From Podarcis bocagei (Eukaryota): a stretch of DNA of 64,000 bases. The position numbers were made by a program, and so were the translations under genes. Of the stretch, positions 42,267 through 48,927 are shown one piece after another. The notes below the pieces were generated by a model, which saw only the letters and a program-made list of their open reading frames with translations, was not told the origin of the DNA and made no database searches. The stretch lies in NCBI GenBank assembly GCA_964188305.1, contig OZ076889.1; one strand, 5' to 3'. The first letter of the stretch is position 1. Every line of letters starts with the position of its first letter.

Positions 42267-42547
42267 GTTGTTGTTGTTGTTGTTGTTGTTTTTTTTTTTT
42301 TAATAAACTTTATTACAATCACATATACTTGCGCATACAAAGAAAAAGTTGTAACATAAAGAAATACAATACACACAGCACATTAAAAACACATACATCT
42401 AAAGTAGTAGAAAAAAAAAACATTACGAAGAAGAAAATTCCAATCATACCCTTACACACATTTGACTTCCCTTAACCTCAGCTTTGGATTAAACATTCTA
42501 CATTAATCTTCTGCAGTTATTTTGTTTGTCTTTACATGTCATAGGAG

Positions 42548-45500
42548 TTAAACATCGTCTACTGTTAAGTTGTTAATTCTCAAGTTAGTCTCAAGGTAAC
42601 TTATAAATTTCGACCAATCTTCTGTCTTTTTAATAGAGTTATCCCGCCTAATATATTGTGTAAGTCTCGCCAATTCCAAATATTGGTACACTTTCACCTG
42701 CCACTCTCTCATTGTTGGAATTTCTGAGGATTTCCATTTCTTTGCTATTAAAATTCTCGCCGCAGTGGCGGCGTACTGGAAGAAAGTCTGATCTTTCTTT
42801 TTTATTTCCTCCCCAATCATCCCTAGAAGGAAAGCTTCAGGTTTCTTGGGAAAATTATACTTCAAAATTTTCTTTAACTCCTCGTAAATTTGTCCCCAGA
42901 AACCCTTCACCTCCTCACAGGTCCACCAAATATGAAAGAAAGTCCCCACCTTATCTTTACATCTCCAGCAAGTGTTATCTGCTGTTCTATACATTCTCCC
43001 TAATCTTACCGGGGTCAGATACCAGCGGTACATCATCTTGTACTGATTCTCACATAAATCAGCACATACGGTAAATCTCATACCTTTCTTCCATAATGTT
43101 TGCCATTTATCATAACCTATCTCATATCCTAGATCTTTATTCCATTTAATCATTACCTCTTTAATCAACACTTCCTTGTTTTCACTTTCCAGCAATTGCC
43201 TATACATTTTGGACAGTAATTTGCTATTACTCTCCATAATCTCCACTTGAAATCTAGATTTATTTTCTCCCATACCTATTCTCTTATGTTCCCTCCATAT
43301 TGCACTAACTTGGTGTAGGTGAAACCAATCCTTAATTTTCTCTTTCAGTTCATCCTGTGATCTTAATTTCCACCCTTCTTCTGATTTAATTAATAAATCC
43401 TCGTACGTCCATCTTTTACCTATCATATTTAGTTTCTTTATTTTGATGATATCCACAGGTGAAAGCCACCAGGGGGTGTTTTGTTCAATCACATTTTTCT
43501 TCCTATTCCAGACTTCCATGAGTGGTCCTCTAACTATATGGTTATGAAATCCTCTATGGATTTTGTCTTTTCCCTGCCAGAGGTAGGCATGCCACCCAAA
43601 TCTTAGATCGAACCCTTCCAGGTCTAATAGATCAGCGTCTTTCAGGGTGGCCCAGTCCTTTATCCAAAGTAGGCATGCGGCCTCATAGTAAAGCCTTAAG
43701 TTTGGTACACCAAAGCCCCCTCTTTCCCTGGAATCCATCAAGTATTTGAGTTTCACCCTAGGTTTCTTCTCTTGCCACATATATTTGGTCAGGGTTCTTT
43801 GCCAATTTTTAAAGCAGGTGGTACCTTTTATAACTGGTAGGTTCTGAAACAGAAATAACAGTCTCGGGAGGATACACATCTTAATCGATTCCATCCTCCC
43901 GGTCCAAGATAAATTCAGTCTACACCAGGTATTCATATCTTTCTTAATTTCCTTCCACAATTTATCATAGTTATCCTCTACCAAGTTAATATTCTTTGTG
44001 GACAACCAAATTCCCAAGTATTTCACCTTATTCGCTACTTTAATATCCACCTGTTGTTCTAGCTGTAATCTTTCTTGTGCTGTCAGATTCTTTATTAATA
44101 ATTTAGTTTTCCCCCTATTTAACTTGAATCCGGATAATTTACCGAACTCTTCCAGAAGTTCTATCGCTCTGCTGGTGGTTTCAAATGGGTTCTCAAAAAA
44201 GAAAACCAGATCATCTGCGTAGGCTTTTAATTTGTACTCTTTATCTCCAATTCTTACTCCCTTAATGTTTGGGGTCGCTCTTATTTTGTTTGTTACTGTT
44301 TCTAACACCAAAATAAACAATAAAGGTGACAGAGGGCAGCCCTGCCTTGTGCCTTTCATAATCGGAAAATGTTTAGTCAAGTTATTATTAATGATCAACC
44401 TAGCCTGCTGCTCTGTATAAATCGCCCTGATGCCCTTCAAATAAGGACCCCTTATGCCCACCTTATCAAGTTTTTGTAGCAGAAATTCCCAAGATACGCG
44501 GTCAAAAGCTTTTTCCGCATCAACAAAAATAAGGGCCGCTGGCACATCTGGTCTTGTCTCCAAATACTCCATGATGTCTAATACATGCCGGACGTTGTCT
44601 CTCAGTTGTCTACCCGGTAAGAATCCCACTTGGTCTCTATGTATATATTTATTTAATAATTTTTTGAATCTACATGCCATGATGTCTGCAAAGATCTTAT
44701 AATCACAGTTTAAAAGTGAAATTGGCCTATAGTTTTTTATATCTGTCTTTTCATTTTCAGTCTTGGGGATTAACGTAATATACGCCTCCTTCCAGGAACT
44801 AGGTATCCTCCCTTCTTGAAGAGTATTATTTATTACCTCCGTTAAAGCCGGCGCTAACAAATCTACCAGTTTTTTATAGTATTTTGCAGGTAGACCGTCC
44901 GGACCAGGGGACTTCCCGTTCTTCATCTTATTAATAGCATCCCGGACCTCTTTTTCAGACACCACATTGTTTAGTTGTGCACAGTCCTCTTCCGTAAAAA
45001 AATTCCTTTCTTCTTGGTCTAGATAGTTCTCTATTTCTACGCTGCTCTCTTCTCCTTTTTCATACAGCTTTTCAAAAAAGGTAACAAACCTATTTTCAAT
45101 TTCCTCTGGGTCCTCTATCACCCTTTCATCTATAATAAGTTTATTGATCACATTTTGTTTCTTTCTTTTTCTGAGCTGCCATGCAAGTAATTTCCCCATT
45201 TTATTGGCCGACTCAAAATATTTCTGTCTCGTAAATTTAATTTTCTGTTCTACCTCTTGATTCAGAATAGCTGAGTATTGGGACTGCAGCACCCTCACCA
45301 TTTGATTAGTCATTTCATCTGTCGGATCTAAAGCGAGTTTTCTTTCATGGTCCCTCAATTGGGCCAAAATGCCATCCTTCTTTTTCTCCCTTAATTTCTT
45401 TCTATAGCTATTTTGCTGTATTAGAAAGCCCCTTAGGACAGCCTTACCGGCATCCCATACCAACTCTATTGGAGTATCTCTATTCAGGTTCGTCTCCAAA

Positions 45501-46303
45501 TATTCTCTCAGGGTTTTTTTTGCCATCTCCAGTACTTCCTCATTTTCAAATAAATATTCATTCATCCTCCACCTGAGCTGCCCTTTCAGTTCGTTTTTAA
45601 TTTCCAAAGTCAGAGGGCAGTGATCTGACAGGGTCCTAGGTAATATCTCGCATCTCTTAACTCTCCATACCATAGCTCTAGTCACCCAAATCTGGTCAAT
45701 CCTACCCCAGCTCTGGTGGGGCTCTGAATAATAAGTAAACTGTTTAGTGGTGGGGTTTCGATGTCTCCAGATGTCAACTAGGTCTAGGTTTCCCACTAAC
45801 TCATTAAATGAGTTGGGGAGCTTCCCCCTATTTGCGTTCCTCTGGTTCTCGCTTCTGTCTATACTCGGTGTTGGGACCCCATTCCAATCTCCCAATAAAA
45901 TTAACTTATAAGGTTCCAGTTCCAGCAGCATGCTTTCTAGTTTTCCAAAGAACTCAGTTCTTTTGGTATTTGGTGCATATACCGACACTACATTGATTCT
46001 TTCCCCTCGAAAATTTAATTGAATACCTAATATTCTACCTTCCTCATCTTTACAGATTTGTCTTGGTTCCCACCTTTCTTTAGCGTAGATTACCACTCCT
46101 TTTTTTTTATTTACATCCGAGTTTACAAATTCTACTCCCAGCTTTTTATTCACCAAGATGTGTCTATGTCTCTTTGCGATATGGGTTTCTTGAAAACAGA
46201 TGACATCGTATTTCTTATTTCTCAAAGCTTTCTGAATTTTATTCCTTTTAATTTTCTCATTCAACCCATTCACGTTCCATGATAAAAGTTTTAAAGTGTC
46301 CAG
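42548..46303 (-). CDS. L1 ORF2p: APE endonuclease, reverse transcriptase, C-terminal CCHC (1251 aa if started at CTG 46303)
   Basis: SWNVNGLN, QETH, VYAPN, GDWN, SDH; KSPGPDG, YRPISLLN, DAEKAFD, GTRQGCPLSPLLF, YADD, KYLGI; CWRC...HIWWTC; start codon inferred. Confidence 0.95.
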   Translation of the reverse strand: MDTLKLLSWNVNGLNEKIKRNKIQKALRNKKYDVICFQETHIAKRHRHILVNKKLGVEFVNSDVNKKKGVVIYAKERWEPRQICKDEEGRILGIQLNFRGERINVVSVYAPNTKRTEFFGKLESMLLELEPYKLILLGDWNGVPTPSIDRSENQRNANRGKLPNSFNELVGNLDLVDIWRHRNPTTKQFTYYSEPHQSWGRIDQIWVTRAMVWRVKRCEILPRTLSDHCPLTLEIKNELKGQLRWRMNEYLFENEEVLEMAKKTLREYLETNLNRDTPIELVWDAGKAVLRGFLIQQNSYRKKLREKKKDGILAQLRDHERKLALDPTDEMTNQMVRVLQSQYSAILNQEVEQKIKFTRQKYFESANKMGKLLAWQLRKRKKQNVINKLIIDERVIEDPEEIENRFVTFFEKLYEKGEESSVEIENYLDQEERNFFTEEDCAQLNNVVSEKEVRDAINKMKNGKSPGPDGLPAKYYKKLVDLLAPALTEVINNTLQEGRIPSSWKEAYITLIPKTENEKTDIKNYRPISLLNCDYKIFADIMACRFKKLLNKYIHRDQVGFLPGRQLRDNVRHVLDIMEYLETRPDVPAALIFVDAEKAFDRVSWEFLLQKLDKVGIRGPYLKGIRAIYTEQQARLIINNNLTKHFPIMKGTRQGCPLSPLLFILVLETVTNKIRATPNIKGVRIGDKEYKLKAYADDLVFFFENPFETTSRAIELLEEFGKLSGFKLNRGKTKLLIKNLTAQERLQLEQQVDIKVANKVKYLGIWLSTKNINLVEDNYDKLWKEIKKDMNTWCRLNLSWTGRMESIKMCILPRLLFLFQNLPVIKGTTCFKNWQRTLTKYMWQEKKPRVKLKYLMDSRERGGFGVPNLRLYYEAACLLWIKDWATLKDADLLDLEGFDLRFGWHAYLWQGKDKIHRGFHNHIVRGPLMEVWNRKKNVIEQNTPWWLSPVDIIKIKKLNMIGKRWTYEDLLIKSEEGWKLRSQDELKEKIKDWFHLHQVSAIWREHKRIGMGENKSRFQVEIMESNSKLLSKMYRQLLESENKEVLIKEVMIKWNKDLGYEIGYDKWQTLWKKGMRFTVCADLCENQYKMMYRWYLTPVRLGRMYRTADNTCWRCKDKVGTFFHIWWTCEEVKGFWGQIYEELKKILKYNFPKKPEAFLLGMIGEEIKKKDQTFFQYAATAARILIAKKWKSSEIPTMREWQVKVYQYLELARLTQYIRRDNSIKKTEDWSKFISYLETNLRINNLTVDDV

Positions 46304-46349
46304 TGTTGTCTTAGTTCTGCAACTACTTTACCTCAAAAAAAAACTCAAA

Positions 46350-47411
46350 TTAAAAACCGACGCCTTTGTTTCCTAGGAGCCCCTCCTCTTCAACCGCCCC
46401 TTCTCCCACTGCGGCTTCTTCATCTTCATCTCCTAAGTTTGACCCCCTCTCTCCTTGGTCTTTCGCGCTCCCTTCCCTCTTTTCTTCCCTTTCTCGCCCA
46501 TTCCCTTTCACCTCTTCATTACTTCGTACTCTATATTCTGTCCTTCCTAACTCTTTTTCATACCTTCTCAGGAACTTCTCTGTTTCTTGTATATCCGTTA
46601 ATTTAAATTTCTTGTCTTTATAGAAGAAAGTAATCCCTTCCGGGAACTCCCATCTAAATTGTATTCCATTTCTCTTTAAAACAGCCACCACTTGTCTATA
46701 GCCCTCTCTTTTTCTTAATAATCTAATTGGAATCTCTTTGTAGATAATAATGGGCCTCCCTTCAATTCTAAGTTTGTTACGGTAGCTCGTCCTTAGAATT
46801 AAATTCCTCATTTCTAGGGAATTGAATATCACCAGGCAGTCTCCCAAGAATTTGTTGGTTTTTAAATGCTGTGGTCTCGACATTCTAAATGCACTATCAA
46901 TCGTTAAAGCTATCTCTACCTCTTCCAAACACAGCCATTTAGAGAGCTCTTTAATCATTTTCTTTCTAACATCCTCATTTCTTTCTTCAACCACACCTCT
47001 AAATTTTAAGTGGAGCTGCTTTTGTCGCATGTCGGCCATAGCAAGGTTGTCCCAAATCTTCTCCTGTGCTTTATTTAGTTCACCCAACTCTTCCCTCATC
47101 CTCCCTGTTTCCCTTTTCTGTTCCCTCAGTTCTTTCTGTAGTTTCTTATTGGACTCCTCAATCATCTTAGATTTTACTGACAGGTCTTGAATTTTGGATG
47201 AGAGCTCTCCTACTGCTTCCTCTATTTTTTTGTCAATCAGGTCTTGCATATCTCCTAGCTTATTTTCCATATATGTTTCGTTTTGTTTAAATTCTTCCTT
47301 TATTTTAATCCATAAGCTATCTAAGTCTTTAATCTCCTCCTGACGCGATGCCTTTCTTTCCCCTGGGGTCCCGCCCATTTTCTTTAAGTCCTTCCCCTCC
47401 TTCCCCATCAT
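46350..47411 (-). CDS. L1 ORF1p (coiled coil, RRM, CTD, acidic tail), 353 aa
   Basis: Heptad-rich N-terminal half; LKFRGVVE...IDSAFRM RRM-like region; RKREGY...FRWEFPEGI CTD-like region; located upstream of ORF2. Confidence 0.92.
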   Translation of the reverse strand: MMGKEGKDLKKMGGTPGERKASRQEEIKDLDSLWIKIKEEFKQNETYMENKLGDMQDLIDKKIEEAVGELSSKIQDLSVKSKMIEESNKKLQKELREQKRETGRMREELGELNKAQEKIWDNLAMADMRQKQLHLKFRGVVEERNEDVRKKMIKELSKWLCLEEVEIALTIDSAFRMSRPQHLKTNKFLGDCLVIFNSLEMRNLILRTSYRNKLRIEGRPIIIYKEIPIRLLRKREGYRQVVAVLKRNGIQFRWEFPEGITFFYKDKKFKLTDIQETEKFLRRYEKELGRTEYRVRSNEEVKGNGREREEKREGSAKDQGERGSNLGDEDEEAAVGEGAVEEEGLLGNKGVGF

Positions 47412-48879
47412 TACTTATAGCACTCCTCCTTTCTTCACTGTTCTTCACTGTTTTCCCTATACTCCTATCCTTTCCTCCTTCCCCTCAAAGAACGTCCACC
47501 GGGGATAACGTATAATATATCTGGTCTAACTATACCGTGTACCCCTACATATAAGCACATAAACACATAAACACATATAAACACGTATAAACCCCGGGTA
47601 GAAGAGAAAAGAAGAAAACCGTGAGGAGGGTATCAGTCCAAAAGTATCAATTAGTCCGCTCCAGGTCTTGACCTTCTCTTTTACTTCTCTCCGTCCTCTC
47701 CCAGGCCTTTACCAACCCTCACCTGCGTCACACCCAACACCCAGTAGGAGGGTGGGGGGGGAGAGAGGGTGGGGAATAGAGAGAGGGGTGGGGTGGCTCT
47801 TAAGCACGTAGTTGTCCCGCACCACTTCTTACTCAGAACATTCAAAGTTTAGTCCTAGTTAGTTCTAGTTAGTTTACCTCCGGCGTTTCAGGAACTTCGA
47901 GCACTTTAAACTCAGACCCAGTCCTGAGAAGGGCTCTGTTCAGTTGGTTAAGCACAGTACCCAGTTTCCACCACCAAGAGCCAGCTTCTTACAATAACCT
48001 ACAGTAGTGCCCTGGTCGGCTGTTGGCGTCACTGCATGGATTGTCTTTAATATATCTCGGGTCTTTAATATATCTCGGGTCGCCAATCTGATACCAGACC
48101 CTTGCCGCACCTCCCTTGTCGTGTTCTTGCCAACTTATCTTAATATATATCCACAGGGAGGTGAGTAGCGTTGAAAAAGTCAGAGAGGTTCTGCAACGTA
48201 ACCAAAATAGGGCCTCTCCGGAGGGCTTGAAAGGCGTTAATCACAATCTATGTCCCAGACTTGGCGTTATGCTTGTTTAATAGAGTTTAATAGAGTTTAA
48301 TAAAGTGGATAAAAAAATCGTTTTGGTCCGTATTTATTATCAATTCGGGTCTAACTCACTCAGTCAGACTGTTTACTAACCTCCTCACTCCTGCGACTCT
48401 CTTTCTGCGCCATCTTGCCTCCGCTGCCGAGGAAAATCCCGAAAGGCAAACAAAAAGTAAAAAAGTACCTAGACGTCTCCTGGCTTCTCATCAGCTGCTC
48501 GCTTAATTAGTTAGCACTTCAGGCAGAGAAAAAAAACCTTTTCATATGCCAGAGACTCCGTTCTTATCTCCAAGGGGTTCCAACGCTATCCGCAGTTGAA
48601 GCTCCGGGCGTTTCGCTGTGGAATCGGCACTTTCCAATTTGCGCTGGCGGTCACCGTTTTTTTTTTCTTGCTCTCTCTGTCCTTCCCAGAGGAGATAGGA
48701 TGACCGCGTCCGCGCTGCAGGTTGCCTCTCCCCCAAGGGTTCCCCCCCTGAAGTTTCGGGGTACGCTACGCCCTTGCGTCTCCCCCACGTCTTCCACAGC
48801 GCCCAGAAAACCGCGAGCTAGCTTTCTGCGCTTCCTCACTGCTCGCGTCCGGAACTGCTCGCGTCCGGAAAATGAGGAA
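47412..48879 (-). promoter_or_regulatory. L1 5' UTR / internal Pol II promoter
   Basis: CpG-rich 48400-48870; YY1-like CAAGATGGCG at 48408-48417; several short tandem duplications. Confidence 0.7.
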
Positions 48880-48880
48880 G

Positions 48881-48927
<47 letters not shown>

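Follow-up and report, generated by a model that had tools for sequence, protein, structure and literature searches.

The full-length L1 retrotransposon in the window, the 64-kb stretch of Podarcis bocagei DNA analysed here, has an intact ORF2 frame with no AUG at its start, and it shares this absence with a diversified lineage of L1 elements from lacertid lizards. We consider it likely, with a probability of about three in four, that this lineage lost the ORF2 AUG before diversifying, that its ORF2 is functional and translated by a non-AUG restart after ORF1, and that CUG is the likeliest start codon in the window copy. The missing ORF2 AUG sets the window element apart from all characterised mammalian L1s as well as from its sister lacertid families. 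The translation of ORF2 from the bicistronic L1 RNA awaits a full explanation, and the key evidence for AUG independence was obtained in cultured cells with engineered human elements. The lacertid lineage is a natural counterpart of that experimental AUG independence. If our reading is correct, a diversified and apparently successful lineage without the AUG would show the mechanism at work in vivo over evolutionary time. We found no description of a naturally AUG-less ORF2 in a vertebrate L1 in the literature; full texts were covered in part, and prior notice is possible.

The window element and its ORF2 start region

The element lies on the minus strand and has the following features.

About 42289-48879, minus strand: full-length L1, consisting of 5′UTR, ORF1, spacer, ORF2, 3′UTR and poly(A)
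47412-48879, minus strand: 5′UTR of about 1.47 kb, read from the sequence
46350-47411, minus strand: ORF1, 353 amino acids, ATG start, TAA stop at 46352-46350
46304-46349, minus strand: spacer of 46 nt separating the ORF1 stop (46352-46350) and the CTG, free of ATG in all frames
46328-46330, minus strand: TAA in frame with ORF2, the upstream limit of its open frame
42548-46327, minus strand: ORF2 frame with 1259 sense codons before its stop (42550-42548) and with endonuclease, reverse transcriptase and Cys-rich motifs intact
46301-46303, minus strand: CTG in the context ACA-CTG-G, with A(-3)/G(+4), the best near-cognate start candidate in the window copy
46298-46300, minus strand: GAC, homologous to the Met codon of ATG-bearing sister families by protein alignment and by the DNA of loci L002 and L003
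46257-46280, minus strand: out-of-frame mini-ORF of seven codons, M-E-R-E-W-V-E-stop, opened by the first AUG after the ORF1 stop
45929-45931, minus strand: first in-frame ATG, inside the endonuclease domain and 124 codons past the CTG
42289-42314, minus strand: AATAAA (42309-42314) and a poly(A) tail of 13 nt (42289-42301)

By its domains, motifs, poly(A) tail and layout, the window element is a true L1. The endonuclease of ORF2 matches the Pfam family Exo_endo_phos (PF03372, E 8e-14), the ORF2 N-terminus aligns with the human L1 endonuclease structures 8sp5 and 1vyb (E 4e-36), and the reverse transcriptase matches RVT_1 (PF00078, E 5.7e-40). The endonuclease motifs SWNVNG (46282), QETH (46192), VYAPN (45982), GDWNG and SDH are present, as are the reverse transcriptase motifs FVDAEKAFD (44527) and YADD (44221). 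At the C-terminus, the translation reads a CCHC-like motif, C-x2-C-x8-H-x4-C, that begins with CWRC (42970). An initial, sequence-only reading of this DNA had described ORF2 as intact, and both domain matches and the 1259 open codons agree with that description. For ORF1, homologues with 59-68% identity (60-68% in Podarcis) carry the UniRef name ‘L1 transposable element RRM domain-containing protein’; the Pfam search of ORF1 returned no family at E ≤ 1 other than weak coiled-coil look-alikes. Exact-protein look-up gave no database record for the window ORF1, for ORF2 taken from its internal ATG, or for the P. muralis protein P0013. Within the 64-kb window, tblastn and blastn found no second L1 copy.

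Tracts of (AAC)n flank the element on both sides (48880-48927 and 42267-42290), and the length of the target-site duplication is undefinable because the duplication falls inside this microsatellite. The extreme 5′ end of the L1 carries two copies of a 16-nt direct repeat, TTCCGGACGCGAGCAG. Within the 5′UTR, the motif AAGATGGCG near 48410 (minus strand) is one that we take to be a putative YY1-like site. Its ATG opens an upstream ORF of 17 codons in a strong Kozak context (48380-48420, minus strand), and a donor-like GTTAGT lies 11 codons past that ATG. The segment 41980-42265 (minus strand), which follows the L1 and its (AAC)n tract immediately on the 3′ side, resembles, by reading, a squamate SINE or another repeat.

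The minus-strand reading of the ORF2 frame is TAA (46330-46328)-S-S-C-R-T-K-T-T-L (CTG, 46303-46301)-D-T-L-K-L-L-S-W-N-V-N-G-L-N. Re-reading reproduced exactly the codon string that had been claimed from the TAA to N-V-N-G-L-N. Ten codons separate the in-frame TAA from T-L-K-L-L-S-W-N and none of them is ATG; given the TAA, initiation must fall within these ten codons. Thus the element lacks the AUG that lies a few codons before (S/T)-x-N-(V/I)-N-G, which is a usual feature of L1 and not a defining one. The sequence itself also bears out three further claims of the first reading: that the CTG at 46303-46301 sits in the context ACA-CTG-G, with A at -3 and G at +4; that the first in-frame ATG (45931) comes 124 codons later, past SWNV, QETH and VYAPN; and that the out-of-frame ATG at 46280 gives only MEREWVE and a stop (46280-46257). 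This last ATG is made by the S-W codons TCA TGG and is absent in the related contig L001, which reads TCG TGG.

One claim of the first reading did not survive comparison with relatives, namely that the CTG occupies the usual position of the L1 Met. The nearest relatives of the window ORF2 are L1 proteins of lacertid lizards, mostly Podarcis muralis. In protein alignment, the lacertid families that possess a start Met open with M-(T/N/A/S)-L-K-x-L-S/T-W-N-V-N-G, and the DNA of two P. muralis loci reads ATG ACT CTT AAA (L002) and ATG TCT TTA ACT (L003). Alignment to these ATG-bearing families puts the usual Met on GAC 46300-46298, with the CTG one codon upstream of it. Because the Met-homologous codon is GAC and the CTG precedes it, the missing start is not explained by a single A>C change.

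Absence of the ORF2 AUG in related lacertid elements

The Logan contig L001 contains an intact element with an ORF1 of 372 amino acids and an ORF2 frame open over 1253 codons, 69% identical to the window ORF2. Its ORF2 frame reads TAA-ATA-ATA-ACT-CAG followed by T-L-K-L-L-S-W-N, again with no ATG. Additional variants were taken from raw DNA reads of a targeted-capture run (X23) that carries the window’s species label; these reads match the window downstream and are clipped at 46299, 46285 or 46291. Variant a (9 reads) has TAA-AGG-GAA-ACA-ATA-ACA-CAC before T-L-K, and variant b (10 reads) has AGA-GAA-ACA-ATA-ACA-CAC before T-L-N-F; neither contains an ATG. A third variant (c, 12 reads) reads ATA-ATG-AAT-CTT, or M-N-L-K, and represents an ATG-bearing family. 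Every relative for which DNA was read has an in-frame stop 4-10 codons before T-L-K.

The database proteins divide in the same way. All 13 that are at least 68% identical to the window ORF2 start at an internal Met, and those at most 63% identical have a canonical Met start, apart from two evidently truncated entries. In the P. muralis proteins P0035, P0036, P0014, P0037 and P0015, the start, as placed by the annotators and not read from the DNA, is the window’s internal Met (45931-45929). Four of them have a length of exactly 1127 amino acids: P0035, whose identity to the window ORF2 is 94%, P0014, P0037 and P0015. A break within the first 10% of the gene in each of four independent copies that are all unbroken over the other 90% would be unlikely.

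In a maximum-likelihood tree (IQ-TREE), the window and 11 proteins form a clade with support of 100/100, and the canonical Met is found in 0 of these 11. The deepest split in the clade separates the window, together with P0035 and P0013, from P0001, which corresponds to L001. The outgroups P0050, P0003, P0046, P0048, P0007, P0008, P0010 and P0011 all start with M-x-L-K; the canonical-Met outgroups begin with P0050 and are the next outgroups but one to the AUG-less clade. A single AUG loss on the stem of the clade is the simplest history, because both DNA-verified members are without the ATG and together they span the clade. Judging from this distribution, the loss of the ORF2 AUG was probably ancestral to the lineage.

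Conservation does not extend to the CTG. At or around its position, L001 and the two AUG-less read variants (a and b) carry ACA, CAC, CAG or ATA, and they have in common an ATA in an A(-3) context. Of the suggestion that this might be a natural CUG-initiated family, the AUG-less family is therefore supported, but CUG initiation would apply at most to the window’s subfamily, since other members carry ACA, CAC, CAG or ATA. A search for start types with a 159-residue N-terminal piece among short contig proteins gave two matches.

Candidate modes of ORF2 initiation

We propose that the lacertid lineage lost its ORF2 AUG before diversifying and went on amplifying with a functional ORF2. ORF2 would be translated from a bicistronic RNA on which ORF1 terminates at 46352-46350, and ribosomes would restart roughly 40-46 nt past that stop without an AUG, between the TAA at 46330 and T-L-K-L-L-S-W-N. 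The most probable start in the window’s subfamily would be the CUG at 46303, in a strong Kozak context with A(-3)/G(+4), and other subfamilies may use an AUA in an A(-3) context at a similar place. Restart after ORF1 termination is suggested by analogy with human L1. For the window copy we infer CUG as the codon used: it is the likeliest start because the only near-cognates in the start stretch are AAG (46312) and the well-placed CUG (46303). By chance, a near-cognate codon is expected in a stretch of 4-10 codons with a frequency of 50-80%. With near-cognates so frequent by chance and the CTG variable within the clade, the lineage has no single defined start codon.

A more specific version, which we regard as possible but hold with distinctly less than even confidence, is that ORF2 has been AUG-less for long and that the restart codon has turned over, being AUA in most subfamilies and CUG here, so that initiation in vivo would be set by position relative to the end of ORF1 translation rather than by which codon is there. 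The start region follows the ORF1 stop at a distance of 34-46 nt in ATG-bearing relatives and of 41-46 nt in AUG-less elements (41-44 nt in L001), and the natural variety of codons at the start site among AUG-less members is consistent with a codon-independent output of ORF2. Together with the ATG-bearing sisters, whose spacers are laid out alike, the AUG-less subfamilies offer a comparative set for ribosome placement, and if restart is indeed set by position, these natural variants could be used to map the features that position the ribosome.

Human L1 is the closest experimental parallel to the restart after ORF1 that we favour. Work on human L1 is reported to show an ORF2 whose own AUG is dispensable and whose translation requires completion of the upstream ORF (Alisch 2006 via PMC4091050; PMC11485995; PMC5972666). 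Like the window element, human L1 (L1Hs) has a bicistronic RNA and a short spacer with in-frame stops (63 nt in human, 46 nt in the window), and the N-termini of the two endonucleases are homologous (E 4e-36). The ORF2 ATG is naturally present in human, mouse and rat L1 (PMC2241872). AUG independence in human L1 has been shown only with engineered mutants, whereas the AUG is naturally absent in the whole lacertid lineage, for which a similar mechanism is proposed.

Among lizard elements, the sister lacertid L1s (L002, L003, P0002-P0005, P0046, P0048 and P0050) resemble the window in architecture, in the ORF1 tail, in a spacer of 34-46 nt, in an in-frame stop that precedes the start by a few codons, and in the N-terminus x-L-K-x-L-S/T-W-N-V-N-G. 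Unlike the window, they start with ATG, have an ORF2 that is 59-61% identical to the window’s, and fall outside the AUG-less clade. In Anolis, ‘clade 1’ L1 elements have a very short spacer or none, and many families co-exist (Boissinot and Sookdeo 2016, PMC5381506); that study measured overlaps and spacers to the ORF2 start codon and does not mention an AUG-less ORF2. Proteins P0017-P0019, from Anolis, share only 38-41% identity with the window ORF2 and have a Met start.

SART1, caliciviruses and influenza B (UAAUG, TURBS) are like the proposed case in tying a downstream cistron to termination of the upstream one. In those systems the restart AUG overlaps the stop or lies next to it, whereas in the window the restart would lie 40-46 nt away and be AUG-less. 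A UGGGA pentamer, which resembles motif 1 of viral termination-reinitiation, is found exactly 56 nt before the ORF1 stop both in the window (46404-46408, minus strand) and in L001 (about 1531-1535), a placement that recalls TURBS and may be due to chance. In L002 the corresponding distance is 62 nt, and L003 lacks the pentamer. A chance placement is plausible, given the G/A-rich coding tail and the 16 occurrences in the 6.6-kb element.

Spliced L1 RNAs are known for human L1. A spliced or internally initiated transcript in which an upstream exon supplies the AUG, or a structured IRES that places a non-AUG codon, would also account for an ORF2 without its own AUG, and we consider either improbable here. 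In addition to the human precedent, a pyrimidine run with TTGCAG at 46317-46345 lies just upstream of the start region, and IRES predictions have been published for long L1 spacers (PMC5381506). However, the pyrimidine run and its AG are not conserved in L001, and other copies vary within the run (46338-46339). The 46-nt spacer of the window is short, and RNA folding at the ORF1/ORF2 junction compared with shuffled sequences revealed no unusual stability in the window (171 nt, z -0.43) or in L001 (z +0.80).

Three specific candidates were tried and set aside. Frameshifting or readthrough from ORF1, with ORF2 in the +1 frame, is impossible, because it would meet the ORF2-frame TAA at 46330, downstream of the ORF1 stop. 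A splice from the 5′UTR donor near 48385 to the AG at 46317 loses the ORF2 frame, and its acceptor is not conserved in L001. An IRES or another stable structure at the junction gained no support from folding energies, which were no better than those of shuffled sequence.

Variation among copies and constraint upstream of the first in-frame ATG

Logan contigs under three species labels were aligned at ≥85% likeness over 44000-48800. This yielded 903, 588 and 871 contigs, of which 124, 68 and 107, respectively, are ≥99% alike. Two spacer positions, 46338 and 46339, differ from the window in ~100% of contigs and in 20 of 21 raw reads. Such private or minority letters close to the start region are what might be expected if the family were ATG-bearing and the window copy had lost its start through a private mutation or sequencing error, being either dead on arrival or the product of an assembly slip. 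We nevertheless regard this as very unlikely. The ATG is also absent from L001 and from two read variants, the internal-Met starts throughout the clade argue against a private loss, and the Met-homologous GAC is three changes away from ATG. Furthermore, position 46303 was not among the best 40 of 1080 differences between the window and other copies in four runs, which weakly suggests that other copies share the CTG and is likewise weak evidence against a private loss. The single private A>C mutation that the sequence-only reading had offered as one of its two options is therefore abandoned: the absence of the ATG is common to L001, to both read variants and, by annotation, to the proteins of the clade.

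Comparison of the window and L001 revealed how the region upstream of the first in-frame ATG has evolved. From T-L-K onwards, the two ORF2 frames can be aligned through all 1249 codons with no gap, and synonymous sites are saturated with differences (pS 0.70-0.79). For the 122-codon segment that precedes the first ATG, pN is 0.084 and pN/pS 0.12, against a pN/pS of 0.23 in the rest of ORF2. This segment is the most constrained part of ORF2 and carries the catalytic motifs SWN, QETH and VYAPN. Because it is under the strongest protein-level constraint, these 122 codons appear to have been translated ever since the window and L001 split. Translation of these upstream codons in two lineages that both lack the AUG argues against an internal AUG start as well as against a clade of dead fossils.

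The fossil explanation, in which the AUG loss was lethal and the clade is extinct, its members being relics with long ORFs, is about as unlikely as a private mutation. At least three subclades arose after the inferred loss, with synonymous saturation and 1249 gap-free codons under purifying selection. Hundreds of contigs occur under the three species labels, with 68-124 per run ≥99% alike, and the window copy retains both ORFs, the poly(A) tail and repeat-flanked ends intact. Least likely of all is that the ORF2 protein starts at AUG 45931, lacking half of the endonuclease, and that the lineage moves without an endonuclease or in trans: this is the only in-frame AUG and the one picked by database annotators, but the 122 codons upstream of it have a pN/pS of 0.12 at saturated synonymous divergence and include catalytic motifs, and in the window as in L001 the open frame extends upstream until a stop shortly before T-L-K.

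The database records show the consequences for annotation. UniProt entries P0035, P0036, P0014, P0037, P0015 and P0013 from P. muralis are annotated from internal Mets and are 1127 or 1103 amino acids long. These entries lack the first half of the endonuclease, probably through the requirement for an ATG. Pipelines with this requirement mis-annotate such ORF2s as 1127-residue proteins without an endonuclease, and intact lacertid L1s are undercounted as a result.

Several further observations concern the region around the ORF1/ORF2 junction. Raw-read depth in the targeted-capture run X23 is 30-50 over 46093-46736 and 2-10 elsewhere in the element. This segment runs from the 3′ part of ORF1 through the spacer and 200 nt into ORF2, and the excess depth reflects a capture bait or else a short derived repeat that contains the segment. 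In runs X1 and X5, contigs join ~46279 to ~46625-46633 with unknown letters between, corresponding to window positions 46270-46633. In related families, unalignable sequence probably takes the place of the acidic ORF1 tail and the spacer, which would make this the fastest-evolving part of the element. Finally, in Podarcis lilfordi, locus L004 (4468-5002) holds an N-terminal fragment of an L1 ORF2 head-to-head with the ORF1-like gene P0033; the fragment has a frame change inside and is a decayed copy of another family.
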